A stretch of 64,000 bases of DNA from positions 18,476,001 through 18,540,000 of the forward strand of contig NC_088802.1 of NCBI RefSeq assembly GCF_011386835.1, given 5' to 3'. Positions 11,501 through 61,842 of the stretch are shown in pieces; positions within the stretch are counted from its first letter, which is position 1, and every line of letters starts with the position of its first letter. The translations under genes were made by a program, and so were the position numbers. Origin of the DNA: Chrysemys picta bellii. Lineage: Eukaryota. Under the pieces are notes generated by a model. It saw only the letters and a list, made by a program, of their open reading frames with translations. It searched no databases and was not told the DNA's origin.

Positions 11501-12079
11501 AGTATTTTGGTGTGTGAGGTTTTCTTTGCCTTGGGGGGTTTAGTCTACACAAAGTCCTGTGTCTGAAGGACTGTGTGACTCTTACTCTTTGTCCCCTGAA
11601 ATAACAGTGCTATTAAAACAAATAAAAAAGAGGCACGAACTCTCTAGCCCTAGCCAGAGCTTCCTTACCTTGTAATCCAAGCCAGCCTCCTCTATGGGAA
11701 CCACCGTGTGAGCTCTGTGAGCCTGGGACTCTCTGCAAACCACACAGATGGGGGTTTGATCATCTTCACAGAACAGTTTCAGAGCCTCCTGGTGTTTCTC
11801 ACACCTTCCCAAGCCTTTGGCTGCCTGGAAACTCAGCCCTTTGGCTATTTCGATAACTCTCGCCAGCTCCCTGTTGGGCCTGAAGTTTCTTTTCCGGGCA
11901 GTTTTTCTGCACTGGGGGCAGGAGAAGTTTCTAACCGATCCCTCCCAGCACTGGCTGATGCAGGCTCGGCAGAAATTGTGTCCGCATTGTATCGACACCG
12001 GGTCCTGAAAGTACTCCAGACAGATGGAGCAAGCCAGCTCTCTTTGCAGGGTCTCTACCCCAGAGCTCTCTGTGGCCAT
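4986..12079 (-). CDS. TRIM gene A: RING/B-box2/coiled-coil/B30.2 E3 ligase (TRIM7/27/39-like class), about 463 aa
   Basis: Exons with GT-AG sites and consistent phases: 12079-11669 (411), 11468-11373 (96), 9806-9576 (231), 7934-7912 (23), 7198-7086 (113), 5503-4986 (518). C3HC4 RING and B-box ligands are intact and the frame is open. No intact linker micro-exon was found. Confidence 0.88.
6234..6601. mobile_element. GC-rich hAT MITE (CATAGGCGCC-type TIR)
   Basis: Perfect 8-bp TSD CCTGGGGA; family members at 41009-41454 and 62152-62588 (near-matching 8-bp TSDs). Confidence 0.8.
7214..7506 (+). mobile_element. CR1 LINE 3' end
   Basis: ORF2 C-terminus remnant (LWNSLPEDV...[17 protein letters not shown]) plus a CR1-type 3' UTR ending TTCTTATGTTCT. 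Related copies at about 28104-28390 (+), 50605-50920 (-) and 59545-59770 (+). Confidence 0.85.
8043..8440 (-). mobile_element. CR1 LINE 3' fragment
   Basis: Reverse-oriented CR1 tail CATAGATT...GAAGGGACCATCGTGATCATCT. Confidence 0.6.
8798..9114. mobile_element. hAT (Charlie-type) MITE
   Basis: TIR CAGCGGTTCTCAAAC / GTTTGAGAAACACTG with a perfect 8-bp TSD GGTTAGCA; close relative at 53876-54223. Confidence 0.85.
9200..9400 (+). mobile_element. MIR/CORE-type SINE remnant
   Basis: CORE motif TCACTTAGTCTCTCTGGCCTCAGTTCCTCATCCATGAAATGGGGAT; similar remnants at about 20040-20150 and 52325-52445. Confidence 0.55.
11669..12079 (-). CDS. Gene A first coding exon: RING + B-box2
   Basis: MATESSGVETLQRELACSICLEYFQDPVSIQCGHNFCRAC...CPQC...[32 protein letters not shown]; donor AAG|GTAAGG. 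Confidence 0.95.
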
Positions 12080-12384
12080 GGCCAGGGCTCCCTGCACCCC
12101 ACGTGCAGCCAGCCCGCACCTTGCAAATGCAGCAGCGGCAGCGATTTGAAATCTTCACGTGTTCAGTGTCTGTTACAGGAAAGGGGCGTTTCCATGCCTG
12201 GGCTGCAACATGAGCCTTGGTTGCACAGGGCCGTCCCCCCTTCCCCGCCGCCCAGGGGTCTGGGCAGAAATGTGCGCGTTTCTCTCTGTGCAGGGAATAG
12301 CACGCGATGCCCAGGGGTGGCGCTCAGTTACACGCAGGGGAGAGAAGAAACACGTGCCTGGTGTTTGAGTTGGGGGGTTACATG

Positions 12385-19279: not shown

Positions 19280-19476
19280 GTTATCACTGCCTGCTGTGTG
19301 CTTCATAATTTCTGTGGAGCAAAGGGAGAGACGTTTCCACAGGGGTGGGGGCAAGGCGGCAGATCAGCAGTCTACTAATTTTGAGCAGCCAGCTACCAGG
19401 GCTATCAGGAGCTCAGCAGGGAGCAATGCGGCTCAGGGTGGCTTTGAAAATCCATTTGATTAATGACCAGCGGTAA
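19280..19476 (+). pseudogene. Harbinger/PIF transposase C-terminal remnant (HARBI1-family-like)
   Basis: VITACCVLHNFCGAKGETF...(frameshift)...FEQPATRAIR...(frameshift)...AQQGAMRLRVALKIHL...*; ACCVLHN is the conserved C-terminal motif of Harbinger transposases. The 5' part is missing. Confidence 0.85.
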
Positions 19477-19741
19477 TGGGTGTTGCTTTTCTGCATTATG
19501 CCTGCCAGTAGTCTGAACCTTGCTTTGACGGCTGTGTGTGTAGTAATGTAACCTTGGAAATACACCCCTTACTTTGCTCTGAAAATGACTCCCAGCCCCC
19601 ACCTGCTGCAACCACTAGAGCCCCCTCCCTTGCTACAGCTGGGGAGACCACCCCACACTCCACTCAGTCCCTGGCCCCTCCAAAGGCACTGCCAGTGAGG
19701 GGGAAAACGATGCCCGGGGAATGGGCTGAGACCCTATAATG

Positions 19742-19966
19742 CAGGGGTTCTTAAACTGGGGGGCGGGACCCCTCAGGGGGGTCTTAAGATTATTACATGG
19801 GGGTTCATGAGTGGTCAGCCTCCATCCTAAACCTCGCTTTGCCTCCAGTATTTATAATGGTGTTAAATATATAAAAAAGTGTTTTTAATTTATAATGGGG
19901 GGGGGGTCGCACTCAGAGGCTTGCTATGTGAAAGGGGTCACCAGTACTAAAGTTTGAGAACCACTG
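19742..19966. mobile_element. hAT MITE nested in the Harbinger element
   Basis: TIRs CAGGGGTTCTTAAAC / GTTTGAGAACCACTG with a perfect TSD CTATAATG. Confidence 0.85.
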
Positions 19967-20309
19967 CTATAATGCATTCCTCATAGGGGCCACTCCAGTG
20001 GCTGCTGTGAGCGTGGGGGTAGTGTGGGCTAATGCTTAGAGCAAGAAGGGGGTGGGAGCCAGGATTCTTGGGTTCAATCTACAGGTCTGGCTCTGTGTGA
20101 CCTTGTTCACCCCCGTTGAGTGCCTCAGTTTCCCTCCCCTTTCACTTTGAAGTCTAAAGATGGTTTTGTTTTCAAGAAATGGACTTTTATTGCCCACAGA
20201 AACAGAAATATGTGCCACAGAGGTAAACCTTGGAAACCACAGGGGAATATACAACTGGGAGGGGGAATGCACATTCACCTTCTGTTTAAAAGTGCACAGG
20301 CCTGGCCTA

Positions 20310-22301
20310 TCACACGTCAGTGTATGGACGGCTGGGAGTCCATTCACCCTCCCCGGGGATTGAGTGGATGGGATACTGCATTGGGCCCCTACGCCAAGTG
20401 GAATGTGTGCGAGGGGGGGAGGGGAAGTAGGGCGATGTTAGAGTGCTGTTCTGGAGGGGCTGCAGAGGGAGTCGAGACTTAAAGTATCGCTCCTGAAGGT
20501 CAAGCAGACGCCTCAAAATGTCTGTTTGTTCCTTCAGAATCCCCAGCACCTCCTGCTGCATGGCACGCTCAGTCTCCTTGGCTTGCACCCTGCTCATAAC
20601 ATCCATTTTTTCTGAGACAGCAGTCCTTGGCTCGGTGTCCGCCCTCCCAGAGGCGTTCATTGTCTCATGAGGCGCGTCGGCGCGTGTTCTCTTCGGCCTT
20701 CGTCTTATCTGGAAGAGCCCCGCCGACAGTGTGGAGGGAGAGCCCCAGGCCGCGCTCCTGGCTGTAAAAGCACAAAGGAACCATTTCAGCGCAGACCCAG
20801 GGTCCAGGGCAGACGTCCTGCATAAAAATCACTCCCTTGAATCCCCGCAAATGTACAGCGGAACATTTGCATTTCTGCAAGGTGTTCATTGGACCGGTTT
20901 GCTGTTTTAGCCATGGGGAGTACGGCCCGGGGGCAGGGGCGTTGGGGCTTCTTCAGAAGTGAGGGTGGGGGAACACAGACCCCTGCCACCCAAATTACAG
21001 CCATGTTAAACAGCGGGTGGCCATGCCCCCCCGCCCCGATTCCGGCGCCCCTTCCCCATTGTGCTCCTGGGTTCTGGCACCCCTGTCCAGTGATGGAGGT
21101 TTTTAAGGCCCGGCTTGACAAAGCCCTGGCTGGGATGATTTAGTTGGGAATTGGTCCTGCTTTGAGCAGGGGGTTGGACTAGATGACCTCTTGAGGTCCC
21201 TTCCAACCCTGATATTCTATGATTCTATGGGAGTAGGACAAGCTATCACAAGGGCGTGGATGGAAGAGGAGGGAGAGAAGGGAAACAGGCACTAGTGTTT
21301 GCGGTTAGAGCAATTGAAATGAATACTAGCACCATCTCCCATAGGTGACCCTAGCTGATACCATGCTCCTGAGGGTAACAGAGGCGGAAAGGGAACAGCT
21401 GCTGCATGCGTTCAGGTATGGACTGGGTCCTTATGCTGCTATCCTGTGTACTGAGATGATGCCTGCTGAATCAATACTGGAGTGGCGCAGGAAAGTGTCC
21501 TACCGTGGTGGAAGAAATAAGGCAGCCCTCCCCAGAAACCTTCAACGGATTGCAGACTACCTCCAGGAAAGTTTCCTGAAGATCTCTATGGAAGATTTTT
21601 GGGACATCCCTGTGTACATAAACAATCTCTTTCGCAGGGCATCCTCTGCCTAGCTGGTCCGGGCACTGAGAAGCAGAGAGCCACTCTGCCTCCACTGATT
21701 ATTTCAATAAAAAATAGCAAATAAGAACATGTGTCCCTACAATATTAATGCTAAGTGTGTACTCACCAGAGGTACCCTCCCCAGCATCATGGCCAGCCAT
21801 GCTGCAGTGCTGCAACTGGCTGGACTGCTCCGGGGTTACAAACAGCTCCTGGCTCCCCCGGACAATGGATCCCCCGCTCGCCTGTCTCCAATTCGTCTCC
21901 TCCTCTTCCTCATCCAGCAGCTCCGACTCACCACTGCCTGCGGTGCCCTGGGACTCTGACTCCTCCGAGGACTCCAGGCGGCTCTTGGGGGTGGGGTCAT
22001 CGCAGAGGATAGCATGCAGCTCTTTGTAAAAGGGGCACGTCTGTGCTGCACCAGAGCGACCGTTCGCCTCCCTTGCCTTCTGGTACGCGAGCCGCAGCTC
22101 CTTTGCTTTCACGCGACACTGCAGCAGGTCCCTCTGGTAGCCCTTCTCCACCATGTCCCGAGAGATCTTCTCATAGACATCCGCATTTCTACGGCTGGAT
22201 TGGAGCTGTGCCTGCACAGCCTCTTCTCCCCACAGGCCAAGGAGATCCAACACCTCCCGCCTACTCCAGGCAGGAGAGCGTTTGGAGCGTGGACCCCGCA
22301 T
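20310..22301 (-). CDS. Harbinger-derived Myb/SANT-like DNA-binding protein (MSANTD-type), two exons, 328 aa
   Basis: Exon 1 22301-21767 (MRGPRSKRSPAWSRREVLDLLGLWGEEAVQAQLQSSRRNADVYEKIS...QCRVKAKELR...CPFYKELHAIL), donor TCTG|GTGAGT. Exon 2 20761-20310 after TTTTACAG, in frame (QIRRRPKRTR...LRRLLDLQE...). No stops; AATAAA at 20191-20186. Confidence 0.82.
21093..21229 (+). mobile_element. CR1 3' terminus inside the Myb/SANT intron
   Basis: ...GGGGGTTGGACTAGATGACCTCTTGAGGTCCCTTCCAACCCTGATATTCTATGATTCTATG; near-identical tail at 43850-43920. Confidence 0.9.
21345..21653 (+). other. Antisense exon-like ORF (102 codons) nested in the Myb/SANT intron
   Basis: Begins exactly at a CCATCTCCCATAG| acceptor, is open to TAG at 21653 and is followed by AATAAA at 21706-21711. 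The peptide is non-repetitive (WRRKVSYRGGRNKAALPRNLQRIADYLQESFLKISMEDFWDIPVYINNLF). Confidence 0.45.
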
Positions 22302-24061
22302 GCTCAGCTGGGCAGGCGAGCTCTCCACTCTGAACAAACAAGACATGGGAAATTCTAATGCTCCCGGTCCTTTAACAGGGGAGGGGTACCTGTGTACCCG
22401 GCTGCTGGGCAGCGGAGTTAAGAACGCTGACCAGAGCAGTCACCACGGAGCATTGTGGGACAACTCCCGGAGGCCACTTAAGCCGCCGGCATCGACTTCT
22501 TTAAGCGCTATGCTTCTCGCGGAGGCAGGGTAATAAAGTCGATGTAGTGGGCGAGTTACGTTGGCAGGAGGGACCTGGTAGTGTAGACGTGTACACAGTT
22601 AGGGCGACATAAACTGCCTTACGTCGACCTAACTCTGTAGTGTAGGCCAGGCCACAGGCAGGAAGTTCAAGCCTGAAGCCAAGCCGAGGAGTGTGTGATG
22701 GGGCTGGGAAGGGCCCAGGGAGCCTCTCTGATAGCCAGGGACTGACCATAATGCAGCCTTGGCCACGATCCCACTTCCTTATCACTCTGGCCACCTGCAG
22801 GGCCGGATTAACCTTGTGTGGGTCCGGCTCCAAACGTATTTATGGGCTCCCATGGAGGCAATGGAGCATGGCACAGGGAGGTCAGTCCCCAGAGCGAGGG
22901 GCCAGCCAGGGGCAATGGGGCATGGCAGGGGCGGCCCTGCTCCACCCAACCCAGGGCAAGAGCACTATTTACAAACCGGCAGTTGTCAGATGCACAGTGG
23001 CCCGCCCGGCCCTGTGCTTCCAGCATGTCCCTTCCTCTCGGGAGCAGGCCCATGCCGTGCCACACAGCCCCCCCCCCCCCAAACACAAATACCCCCACTG
23101 ACTCCCCCTATGCCAAGAGCCCCCCTGGACTCACTACGCCCAGCACCCCCCCCCCAGATCCACATCACAAATGCACAGCACCCTGCACACCACCCCTGCC
23201 CAGCACAGCCCCACCACAACTGCCCAGCACCCCACACAGAACCCCCACTCCCTAGTGCTCCAACACACACAGATCTTCAGACACCCCCAGATTCCCCAGA
23301 GACCCACTCCCCCATGCCCTGCCTCCCGGACGCACTCACCGGCCCTGCTGGGAGGCGACTGTGTCTGCCGGGCTGAGCTGGCAGCGCAGCCAGGGCTGGT
23401 CCCAGTGTTGGGAATCGCTCCGGCTCCTCAGACGTGGCGCAACTGCCCTGACCGGGCTCCCTAAGGACCCACTTGCCTGGAGGGGCCCAGCCAAGCCCCC
23501 CCACACTGTCCGAGACTGGCCAGGCTTCTGCACCAGTCCCAGGCGGCTCAGCTCCAGGGAGACAGGTGGGGCCCCACAGGTGGTGGGAAGCAGACTGCCC
23601 AGAGCCGGAAGTGCACTGCGGTCCGGCCAGGGGGCTAAGAGGAGCCGGCGGGTGGGGCCGGGGGTGGAGAGGAGCCCTGGGCCAGCGGAGAAGAGCAAGG
23701 GGTGGGTGGGGGGAGCCAGCAGGCAGGCAGGGTCTCAGGGCTCAGTGCAAGCAGAGCAGGCCAGGGCCCCTTCTGAGCATGGGCCCGGCTCCATGGTGCC
23801 ACTGGAAACCCGAGACTGGCCACCTGCTGCTGGATTCAATCAGCGTCTGCCCTGCCCCAGGGTTGCCCAGAGCTCCTGGGGAATCTGCCCCAGTCCCAGA
23901 GCCAGGCAAGGAGTCCCAGTCCCACTCCAGCCCACAGAGGGGAACAGAGACAGACACACACAATCCCCAACCAGCAGCACACGGCCCCAGAGAGACGCAC
24001 AAACTTCCCACACTGACATTCATCCCCACGGCCCTGCTGGGTAACAACACTGGGCACCTAC

Positions 24062-25240
24062 CAGGTACTCTGGGCTTCCTTTCTCTGGTCAGTTTCAATC
24101 CCAGGAGCTTTTCTCTCTCTTCCTTCAGAGCCTGCAGTCGGGTCTGGAATTGTTCCTGGGCAAAGGGACATGGGAGGTGCGGGGGAGGGTGTTAATTTTT
24201 TTTCTTTTGGAGCATGAGGCTCAATGATCCTCCCCTCCCCCCAACAATAACGCTGCTGTGCGGATTTAGCTTTCCAGTTTATTTAACCGAGCAGCAGGCC
24301 GGGAGAGCACCCCCATGGCAACTCACGGGCCAGGCCATGGAAGATGCAGGAACTGGGGGAGAACCCCTGGTCACAGAGGAGACCTAGTTTATCTTAGGAA
24401 TGCAAGCTGGGTCCAGGCCTCCAATGTACAAACCCTAGTGCCTCCCTATGTAGCAGTGGCCTCTCAGCGTGCTTGGTAGAGATCTCTTTCCTACAACTCT
24501 GCTCCCATATTGCTGATTGCTAGTAAAACAGAGGGAGGCAGGTTTGCTCCAAAAATTCATCATCAATTATTCCTAAGATTGAGGCCCAAAATCAGTAACT
24601 TCACCTAATGATCCTGATAAGATCATTGTAATTAACAAATAACAACCAATAAAGTGGCAGAAGATACGGAGTTCAGGTGAAAGGAACCCCAACATCTGAA
24701 CATCTGGAAATTCACAAGTAAGGTGCCAGACGCCATGAGGTCTGTCTGAACTGCTGAGTTTTGGCCTCTGAAATCTAGGTTTGGAAAAAAGCCACCGGTA
24801 CAAATATTGTTAGTGGGCAAATATTTCCTACCTTGTCCTCCTGGGCAGCCTCCTCTATGGGAACCACCCTGTGAGATCTGGCTCAGAGCCTTGGCTCTCT
24901 CACATACCACACAGATGGGGGTTTGGTCCACTTCACAGAAGAGTTTCTGGGCCTCCTGGTGTCTCTCACACACTCACTCGTCCTGAGCCTTTGGCCCTCT
25001 GGCTATTTCGATAACTCTCGCCAGTTCCCTGCTGGGCTGCAGGTTTCTCTGCTGGGCAGTTTCTCTGCACTGGGGGCAGGAGAAGTTTGGCTCCGACTCC
25101 CCCCAGCAATGGCTGATGCAAGCCCGGAAGAAGTTGTGCCCGCAGTGGATAGACACCGGCTCGTGGAAATACTCCAGGCAGATGGAACAAGAAGCTTCCT
25201 CCCGGAGACTTTCTGCAGTGCAGGGCTCTCTGCAGGCAAT
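24062..25240 (-). pseudogene. TRIM pseudogene B (RING/B-box exon plus second exon only)
   Basis: Exon 25240-24832: start codon reads ATT, RING Cys replaced by Phe (HNFFRAC), in-frame TGA at 24976-24974, frameshift in the B-box. Exon 24155-24062 is 94 nt instead of 96. No downstream TRIM exons found before gene A. Confidence 0.9.
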
Positions 25241-25639
25241 GGACCCCGGCGGGAAAGGGGTAACCAAGTTAGTTTGAATTTACAGCCCTCTGGCAGAGGA
25301 ACACAGGATGGAATTGGGTGTTTCCCTTCCTGGATCTGTCTCATTGGCTGAGCCGCGTCTGTGACTTCTCCAGGCCCCTGGGGGGATCTGGTGAGAAACG
25401 TGATCCTCTGTGTGCTGGGGACAGTGTTTAAACTCAGGTTAATAGGACATTTACACTGGAAATAAAGTCAGACAGAGAGATTTTGTTCCCTTAGGGGAAA
25501 ACAGACTTTAAAGGCAACGTCACTCTTTGAAAATAAATAAATAAATGGAATTCAGTTATTTGACTCCCAAATCACCACATAAGAACAGCCACAATGGCTC
25601 AGACAAGGTCCATTAAGCCCAGTGTCCTTCTGACAGTGG

Positions 25640-27139: not shown

Positions 27140-27524
27140 GATACATTAATACATTTAACACATGCTACATTATTAACATTCTTTTATTTTATTCTAAATT
27201 ATACAAAATACAAACATAAAATCCTCCTACTACACGCTGCAGTGGCACACTGTGGACGCGCCCTCAGCTGCCAGAACAGAATTTGACCAAGCTTCGTAGT
27301 GTTGTGTGTAGACCAGCCTCAGTCCTATTGACACGGCTTGTCACACGGCGATTTCATACTGTGTCCTGCCCGGGGGGGGGGGAATTTCCCCTCCCCAGGG
27401 ACTGCAACTCCTCACAGCTCAGAAAATGAAGGAACTTCAGCAAGGGAACCGCCCAGTTGCTGACCAAGGCTGAAGAGATTGTAAAGTGAAACTAACCTTT
27501 TCATTCTCCCCCTGGCAGGCAGCC

Positions 27525-27941
27525 ATGGCAGCCCCGGATCCTGTGGAGTGTTTGCAAAAAGAAGTTTCTTGTTCCATCTGTCTGGATTATTTTACTGACC
27601 CGGTGTCTATCGATTGTGGGCACAACTTCTGCCGCGACTGCATCAGGCAGTGCTCGAAGAAATCGGAGGCCAAACTCTCCTGCCCTCAGTGCAGAGGCAT
27701 GGCCCTGAAGAGAACATTCAGGCCCAGCCGGGAGTTAGCAAATGTGGCCGAAATAGCCAAACGGCTGAGTTGCCAGGCTGCCCAAGGGGCTGGAAGGGAG
27801 AGGGTGTGTGAGAACCACCAGGAGGGTCTGAAACTGTTCTGTGAGGAGGATCAAAGCCCCATCTGTCTGATCTGCAGAGAGTCCCGCGCTCACAGATTTC
27901 ACACTGTGGCTCCCATAGAGGAAGCTATCCAGGACTACAAG
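27525..27941 (+). CDS. Gene C first coding exon: RING + B-box2
   Basis: [39 protein letters not shown]...CPQC...[32 protein letters not shown]; donor AAG|GTAAGA. Confidence 0.95.
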
Positions 27942-42856: not shown

Positions 42857-43234
42857 GTGAGATTAGGTGAAATCTAACTCCTAACCACCAATAATTTTTC
42901 TTACTGTGTCTGGATTTAAATAAATGATTACATTACATTCATTTATTGACATTTGGGGGCCGGATTTCACCGTTCTGCCCTTCAGTAGCAGAGAGATGCA
43001 TTCTCTTAATTGCGGTTTCAAAGAGGTTTTTTTTAACCTGGGAATTAAGTAGCGTTGTTCCCTGCATGGGGAGGGTCACATTGCTCTCCAGGGCCTCAGG
43101 GGCTGAAACTAGATGGGGCTCATTCCAGCCCAGCAAATGAGCCGGCTTCAGGAGAAGAAATGCTGTCAGGATGCACTCAAAGGGAAGTGATGTGAAACTA
43201 ACCTGCTGTCACACTTGTCCTCACGGAGAGAGCC

Positions 43235-43642
43235 ATGGCTACTGTGGAAAAACTCCAAGAGGAAGCTTCTTGTTCCATCTGTTTGGAGTATTTCCAAGAC
43301 CCGGTGTCTATACACTGCGGGCACAACTTCTGCCGAGCCTGCATCACTCAGTGCTGGGCCGAACTGGCTACAAACTTCTCCTGCCCGCAGTGCAGACAGA
43401 CCGCCCAGCAGAGAAACTTCAGGCTCAACAGGGAGCTGGCGAACATGGTGGAGCTAGTGAAACAGCTGAAGTTGCCTCCAACAAAAGAGCCAGAGGCGGA
43501 GCGAGTGTGCGAGAAACACAGGGAGCCTCTGAAACTCTTCTGTGAGGAGGAACAACAATTAATCTGTTTGGTCTGCAGAGAGTCCTGGGCGCACGGAGCT
43601 CACGCTGTGGTTCCCATAGAGGAGGCTGCCCAGAAGTACAAG
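43235..43642 (+). CDS. Gene D first coding exon: RING + B-box2
   Basis: MATVEKLQEEASCSICLEYFQDPVSIHCGHNFCRAC...CPQC...CEKHREPLKLFCEEEQQLICLVCRESWAHGAH; donor AAG|GTAGGG. Confidence 0.95.
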
Positions 43643-61200: not shown

Positions 61201-61425
61201 AGGGGGGCGGTTAAGGTGCAGCTAAGCCAGTGCTCAAAGCAGTTCAGCCCTAAGTGTGGGCAAATTCACTGCACCCGTCGCTCATGACTATAACAACAGG
61301 TGAGGTCTGTCACCCAGAAGAGGTGACTTCAGGAAGCGAAAGGCTGGGTTGCTGCTTCCTGCTATGTGCGTTTCAGACCAGAGGGGAAACTGAAAATAAC
61401 CCAGTCAGGCTCCCTGCAGCTAGCC

Positions 61426-61842
61426 ATGGCCACAGAGAGCCCTGTAGGAAAGCTTGAAGATGAAGTCACTTGTTCCATCTGTTTGGAGTATTTCAAAGCC
61501 CCGGTGTCTATCCACTGTGGGCACAACTTCTGCCAAGCCTGCATCGACCAGTGCTGGGGGGAGTCGGAGACAAACTTCTCCTGCCCCCAGTGCAGAGAAA
61601 CCGCCCAGCAGAGAAACTGCAAGCCCAACAGGGAGCTGGGGCGTATTGCAGAAATAGCCAAGCAGCTGAGCTTGCGGGTGGCAGCCGGAGAGGAGGGGAG
61701 AGTGTGTGACCTGTATGAGGAGGATTTGAAATTCTTCTGTGAAGAGGATCGAAAACTAATAGGTTTGATCTACAGGGACCGTGAAGCTCACAAGTCTCAG
61801 CCTGTGGGTCCCACACCGGAGGCTGCTGCTAGGAATTACAAG
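61426..61842 (+). CDS. TRIM gene E first coding exon: intact RING, degenerate B-box2 (rest of gene outside the window)
   Basis: MATESPVGKLEDEVTCSICLEYFKAPVSIHCGHNFCQAC...CPQC; 417-nt open exon with CAG acceptor and AAG|GTAGGA donor; B-box region reads CDLYEEDLKFFCEEDRKLIGLIYRDREAHKSQ. Confidence 0.85.

Follow-up and report, generated by a model that had tools for sequence, protein, structure and literature searches.

Can the remains of a dead immune-gene duplicate serve as the 5' leader, and perhaps as the promoter, of a transposon-derived gene next to it? This question is raised by a stretch of 64,000 nucleotides (nt) from Chrysemys picta bellii (contig NC_088802.1, positions 18,476,001 to 18,540,000; hereafter the window, to which coordinates refer unless another locus is named). 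The window is a TRIM gene cluster in which a TRIM pseudogene, B, is followed by a Harbinger-derived gene with a Myb/SANT domain, here called Myb; all features of B and Myb described below are on the minus strand. A preliminary description made from the sequence alone had placed Myb on the same strand as B and about 1.7 kilobases (kb) downstream, which is correct, and had proposed promoter capture, with B as the 5' leader and its promoter as the driver of Myb. The leader splice is borne out by RNA-seq contigs from Mauremys; these contigs start inside B exon 2, and the B promoter is no more than a possible driver. Taken as a whole, it is probable that the Myb mRNA is formed by splicing of the B exon 2 donor to an acceptor near the Myb ATG, that this arrangement is ancient and that the Myb open reading frame (ORF) has been under selection.

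Both surviving exons of B keep an intact splice donor, with last exon bases at 24832 (AAG/GTAGGA) and 24062 (CTG/GTAGGT). Ahead of Myb, a pyrimidine tract leads into an acceptor-like AG at 22331-22330, 28 nt before the Myb ATG at 22301, which has an A at -3. These sites had been recorded in the preliminary description, which predicted a 24062>22329 junction from them, and this junction was present in all three Mauremys RNA-seq contigs from Logan, each of about 1200 nt (L008 from SRR27880527, L009 from SRR27880526 and L010 from SRR27880529). The protein products of the contigs (P0062, P0063 and P0064) were found in the 90% cluster of the Mauremys orthologue, and the contigs were compared with the Mauremys reevesii genome locus (L003). 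Nucleotides 1-70 of L008 are 100% identical to L003 8183-8252, which corresponds to window 24129-24062, that is, B exon 2 to its last base; nucleotides 71-621 match L003 9972-10523 and window 22329-21767, beginning with the base next to the AG and covering Myb exon 1; and nucleotides 621-1202 correspond to window 20762-20181, comprising Myb exon 2 and the 3' untranslated region (UTR) and ending just past the AATAAA. L009 and L010 carry the same join of B exon 2 to Myb. Since the B exon 2 donor is joined to the Myb acceptor in transcripts, dead TRIM B provides the 5' leader of the Myb mRNA.

It is scarcely credible that the junction is an assembly chimera of separate TRIM and Myb transcripts. 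TRIM exon 2 sequences are alike among paralogues (about 80-92%), which could favor such an artifact, but the 70 nt in the contigs are 100% identical to B exon 2 and at most 92% identical to the paralogues. The contigs are 99.7-100% identical to the M. reevesii locus and break exactly at the genomic GT and AG, and no k-mers are common at the join. In addition, the three products are one to three residues apart, indicating that the contigs come from different alleles or animals, and the same junction was recovered from three runs. From the orthologue we infer that the same splice takes place in Chrysemys picta, where B exon 2 probably forms the 5' leader of the Myb mRNA.

The leader in L008 has no ATG, and an in-frame TGA stands ahead of the Myb ATG; therefore the host exon is purely untranslated. 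A single ORF fusing host and transposon domains is absent from the locus, B having stops and no ATG. An ancestral in-frame TRIM-Myb fusion protein was also considered and rejected, since the ancestral 96-nt exon 2 (phase 0) puts the Myb exon out of frame and into a stop. An upstream ATG in the Myb frame lies at 22346-22344, just before the acceptor, and is removed by the B-to-Myb splice. It is open in all six turtles that were compared, namely the window and the orthologous loci of Emys, Chelonoidis, Mauremys, Pangshura and Macrochelys, and an unspliced transcript driven by the element would use it as its start codon. In gene models from several pipelines, the protein begins with MRGPR..., past the acceptor. 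In four species, NCBI lists two protein accessions with an identical coding sequence (CDS). By NCBI convention, paired accessions with the same CDS imply transcript variants that differ in their UTRs, and the two accessions per identical Myb CDS fit alternative UTR structures.

B itself is dead, as the preliminary description had stated. Its start codon has become ATT at 25240-25238, a position at which ATG stands in the four intact paralogues of the window. The RING frame is still recognizable (Pfam zf-C3HC4_4, E 3.6e-12) and terminates at a TGA at 24976-24974, while the B-box remnant matched by Pfam sits in a different frame. No B30.2 or later exon of B was detectable downstream by tblastn, and a tblastn search beyond the element for remnants of B exons 3-7, which would mark an insertion into B intron 2, found none. 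B thus has neither the start codon, nor the open RING/B-box/coiled-coil frame, nor the B30.2 exon of a functional TRIM. The TRIM genes to which it belongs are of the reptile major histocompatibility complex (MHC)-linked type, with four intact-looking copies in the window; exons 1-2 of B and its upstream module are homologous to theirs at 73-82% DNA identity, whereas B differs from the intact genes in its missing ATG, premature stop, frameshifts and absent exons 3-7. The only ATG in B exon 1 (25300-24833) and exon 2 is an ATG-TGA at 24905, and exon 2 (24155-24062) measures 94 nt in the window as against 96 nt in most orthologues. In all six turtles B has ATT in place of ATG, so the ancestor that they share already had a dead B. 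The stop in the RING frame was seen in the window, in Mauremys and in a tortoise fragment, and lineage-specific frameshifting indels of 5-16 nt have been added to B since this shared death. In Mauremys B (L003 6943-7338), one extra base joins the CCAAT-box ATG to the RING frame, giving a RING-only ORF of 131 amino acids (aa).

The five orthologous loci hold the same arrangement, being collinear with the window from 28000 to 18000 at 82-95% identity and flanked upstream by a divergent TRIM and downstream by one on the same strand. A protein search found Myb orthologues of 322-328 aa with 96% identity in Emys, 87% in Chelonoidis and Pangshura, 84% in Macrochelys and 79% in Mauremys; the Mauremys value is that of the best local alignment, and at the DNA level Mauremys is about 89-93% identical. 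The six turtles have kept the two B donors, the exon 2 acceptor, the promoter motifs and the Myb acceptor, which is CAG except in Mauremys, where it reads TAG. Judged by this sequence comparison, in which the locus is collinear and B is dead in all six, the B-Myb arrangement predates the split of Emydidae, Geoemydidae, Testudinidae and Chelydridae, which is of the order of 100 million years old. A relative in Pelodiscus (L006) was examined as a further orthologue and rejected, as only its exon 1 is similar (68%) and no TRIM neighbor lies within 10 kb.

The Myb ORF contains a Myb_DNA-bind_4 domain (PF13837, E 5.2e-19, residues 25-113) and is identical in the window to P0059, the protein of C. 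picta LOC101937139, a gene with the accessions XP_008165363.2 and XP_023961298.2; 21767 is the last base of exon 1 and 20761 the first of exon 2. It belongs to a multi-copy transposon-like family with dozens of paralogues, 41-64% identical, in turtle genomes. A copy in Caretta shares DNA with the window flanks at 22476-22409, 21571-21475 and 19470-19278, and the conservation of 22476-22409 in this paralogue indicates that this segment is part of the transposon family. Pfam gave no match to a partner transposase (DDE_Tnp_4) in ORFs of at least 50 aa across 19405-21695, a scan confined to ORFs that small remnants may escape, and no matching terminal inverted repeat was found between the proposed ends of the element, which is old. 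The Myb reading frame, taken exon by exon, has no stops in the six species, an outcome to which neutral simulation assigns a P of at most about 0.016 when the total length of the tree is at least 0.10. Indels are multiples of three in all 5 blocks of the Myb CDS, compared with 1/8 in B exon 1, 0/3 in B exon 2 and about 23% in flanking non-coding DNA. Pairwise ratios of nonsynonymous to synonymous substitution rates (dN/dS), summed over exons that were analyzed singly, range from 0.37 to 0.80. By these sequence measures the Myb ORF is under weak but real constraint and is kept by selection. Separately, isoform X2 proteins of three species (P0007, P0008 and P0065) lack the acidic tail of Myb exon 1, which is skipped through an internal GTGAGT donor near 21930 (minus strand).

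Upstream of B, an element resembling an ETS-IRF composite element (EICE) or interferon-stimulated response element (ISRE), GGAAGGGAAAC, is located at 25330-25320 as the preliminary description had it; the CCAAT box that it placed at 25348-25344 is present one base away, at 25347-25343. GGAAGGGAAAC occurs 3 times in the window against 0.64 expected. B thus has a GGAANNGAAA-type ISRE/EICE element near its start site, and an aligned element stands upstream of the intact paralogues. Alignment with the four paralogues shows that the B upstream module is homologous to theirs, and these carry an aligned CCAAT-like box, GGAAGnGAAAC and GAAACTAAC ahead of the ATG. Judged by this homology, the B upstream module is clearly a TRIM family promoter. 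All five TRIM first exons of the window share the same module order, with TCACATTTCTC, the CCAAT-like box, GGAAGnGAAAC and GAAACTAAC followed by the ATG, which suggests a common family promoter of the five TRIMs, possibly responsive to IRF and ETS factors. A UniProt/Ensembl fragment from Gopherus agassizii (P0069) reads through the B upstream region and exon 1 from approximately the equivalent of 25396. Since it begins upstream of the CCAAT and EICE motifs, these motifs would be transcribed sequence there and not promoter.

A leader taken from B exon 2 requires that transcription starts in TRIM-B territory, and both the position of the start site and any immune regulation are points that we infer. 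Several observations weigh against this account for Myb of C. picta. The transcripts with the junction come from Mauremys, a related genus, and not from Chrysemys. In these slowly evolving genomes, mean identity among the six turtles is 0.87-0.96, whether in exons, introns or intergenic DNA; taken alone, the conserved splice sites and promoter therefore count for little, and conservation was dropped as proof of leader function. The poverty of the leader in ATG is inherited TRIM composition: it is not peculiar to B, as the first exons of intact paralogues hold 2 ATGs where about 6 are expected, and depletion of ATG in B exon 1 as a signal of selection on a 5' UTR was therefore ruled out. All three contigs have their first base at L003 8182/8183 (window 24130/24129), so that the first 25-26 nt of B exon 2 are missing from them; at the 3' end they look natural. 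Queried with the ORF of B exon 1, transcript assemblies yielded no product of that exon, although a gene caller should report the 131-aa ORF of Mauremys. The highest ratio of observed to expected CpG in the region, 0.6-0.8, lies at the 5' end of the element itself (22700-22300), and an older Chelonoidis model (P0068) starts unspliced at the upstream ATG.

Promoter capture in its full form, in which transcription would start at the TRIM-family promoter of B, run from B exon 1 through B exon 2 to Myb and come under interferon-type control, can be held only tentatively and is somewhat less likely than not. It draws on a promoter module that is common to the intact paralogues and nearly invariant in the six turtles, on an exon 1 donor and an exon 2 acceptor that are intact in all six, on the fact that B exon 2 is normally an internal exon, and on the two NCBI transcript variants per species. 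P0069 also covers B exon 1 and is the sole sign of its transcription, but it begins upstream of the CCAAT and EICE motifs. Against it stand contigs from three runs that stop at the same base inside exon 2 and have natural 3' ends, as well as the missing exon 1 product in transcript assemblies; exon 1 and the CCAAT/EICE promoter may therefore go unused. The narrower claim that the TRIM promoter drives Myb through B exon 1 is, on the sequence evidence, a fair-sized possibility that stops short of even. The same holds for capture of the donor by itself, which we regard as a serious possibility although not one to be expected outright: Myb would be transcribed from B intron 1 or exon 2, near 24130, with a short first exon and no part for the TRIM promoter. 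The common start of the three contigs argues for this, and no k-mer of 17 or more common to nearby paralogues was found that would explain a break in assembly. Near 24130, however, neither a TATA nor an initiator-like motif lies at a suitable distance, the CpG ratio is low, the exon 2 acceptor is good and conserved, and a common polymorphism or a feature of the assembly graph could also yield identical contig ends. If instead the 5' end of the element (22700-22330) were the main promoter, the B-to-Myb splice would be a minor read-in isoform, which appears improbable. The peak in CpG, the conservation of 22476-22409 in the Caretta paralogue and the start of P0068 at the upstream ATG are in its favor, but every assembled transcript found has the spliced leader, and the downstream ATG is the start in all current models, even though the upstream one is in frame and open. 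The element promoter could coexist with a start at the TRIM promoter or in exon 2/intron 1, and its CpG-rich 5' end may drive other Myb isoforms.

The mechanism that we propose for the leader runs as follows. Myb, the Harbinger-derived Myb/SANT gene, lies on the same strand as the two exons that survive of dead TRIM B and some 1.7 kb beyond them. The B exon 2 donor, still working, would be spliced to the AG that precedes 22329, so that the dead host exon would supply an ATG-free 5' leader and the splice would remove the in-frame upstream ATG of the element. Transcription would begin in TRIM-B territory, either at the TRIM-family promoter by way of exon 1 or in B intron 1/exon 2. The arrangement was fixed before the durocryptodiran radiation, and selection has held the Myb frame since.

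The features of the locus are collected in the table. The window contains five RING/B-box first exons, at 12097, 25267, 27486, 43235 and 61366, and three B30.2 exons.

Table. Features of the TRIM B and Myb locus and upstream modules of the TRIM cluster (window coordinates).
Feature	Position	Strand	Evidence
TRIM B upstream module	25268..25396	-	paralogue alignment (n=4), motif searches; nearly invariant in six turtles
TRIM B pseudo-exon 1 (RING and B-box remnant)	24832..25267	-	Pfam RING and B-box matches
TRIM B exon 2 (coiled-coil exon, 94 nt; donor GT 24061-24060)	24062..24155	-	contigs L008, L009, L010
Captured intron, B exon 2 to Myb exon 1 (1732 nt, GT...AG)	22330..24061	-	contig junction, alignments, CpG profile
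Myb/SANT exon 1 (leader 22329-22302, 28 nt; ATG 22301; Myb_DNA-bind_4)	21767..22329	-	Pfam, protein identity, contig mapping
Myb intron	20762..21766	-	exon 1-exon 2 junction at nt 621 of L008
Myb exon 2 (coding to stop 20312-20310, 3' UTR, AATAAA 20191-20186)	20181..20761	-	L008 nt 621-1202; protein P0059
Upstream ATG in Myb frame	22344..22346	-	ORF 21699-22346; kept in six species
Shared TRIM upstream modules	12065-12295, 25225-25450, 27310-27540, 43020-43250, 61210-61440		

Other observations concern the introns and the proposed 5' end of the element. Within the captured intron, a GC-rich block at 23337-23700 (minus strand) ends in a strong donor-like GTGAGT near 23336 that is kept in the six turtles; the block resembles a non-coding exon and is not in the Mauremys transcripts. 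The captured intron also takes in the CpG-rich 5' end of the element (22700-22332). A 48-nt imperfect palindrome (75%) at 22592-22639, at the proposed 5' end of the element, is partly deleted in Pangshura and Macrochelys. The Myb intron carries a 134-nt insertion (21229-21096) resembling a short interspersed nuclear element. The orthologues of Emys, Chelonoidis, Mauremys and Pangshura lack it; it is recent and belongs to the Chrysemys lineage, and copies of the sequence occur elsewhere in the Macrochelys and Pelodiscus loci. The same intron contains an antisense ORF of 102 aa (21345-21653, plus strand) that is open in 5 of the 6 orthologous loci, is broken in Macrochelys by a 273-nt insertion and has no significant Pfam match.

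The locus offers a clean and datable case of a transposon gene turning into a host gene, with a B-Myb pair retained across turtle families. Rather than bringing its own expression signals, Myb makes use of the donor left behind by a dead immune duplicate, and perhaps of its promoter as well. The locus also demonstrates that an exon of a pseudogene can live on in the role of a functional 5' leader. Were the TRIM promoter the driver, a reptile would offer a testable example in which a DNA-binding protein of transposon origin is under innate-immune control. Stated in full, with the ISRE/EICE-bearing B promoter driving Myb and a DNA-binding protein encoded within a TRIM cluster and wired, through a non-coding capture of dead TRIM exons, into the interferon/innate program of turtles for about 100 million years, this idea is unlikely, though not far-fetched.

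Retrogenes are a familiar parallel, as they recruit nearby promoters or 5' exons and gain expression by splicing from a pre-existing upstream exon. Myb is likewise a newcomer spliced from an upstream exon that was already there, whereas here a DNA-transposon gene is the newcomer, and a dead immune-gene duplicate supplies the donor exon. Domestication of Harbinger Myb-like genes is already known from NAIF1 and the MSANTD family (PMC9392472). Like these, the turtle gene is Myb/SANT-like and of Harbinger origin, has a fixed locus and an intact ORF, and has no recognizable transposase at the locus. In contrast to them, it has been seen in turtles only, with identity of at least 79% found only within durocryptodires; its constraint is weak (dN/dS of about 0.5), it still lies within recognizable transposon sequence, and its 5' leader derives from a dead TRIM.

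The closest comparison is with transposase capture, where an acceptor already present in the ancestral transposon receives the splice from host exons, as in KRABINER (Cosby et al., bioRxiv 10.1101/2020.05.07.082677). At the turtle locus, too, a transposon gene lies beside a host gene and host exons are joined to an acceptor just upstream of its ORF. Relatives of Myb in Pelodiscus and Caretta have a pyrimidine tract and an AG 20-50 nt before the ATG (two copies, which align poorly there), and the acceptor may be a feature of the transposon family. Unlike in transposase capture, the host part is non-coding, with no ATG, with stops and with a 96-nt exon 2 out of frame, so that there is no fusion protein; the captured gene is a Harbinger Myb-like accessory gene and not a transposase, and the host partner is a pseudogene. 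At the turtle locus the transposase-capture route is extended in two respects, as it takes in a Harbinger Myb-like accessory gene and a host part that is purely non-coding.

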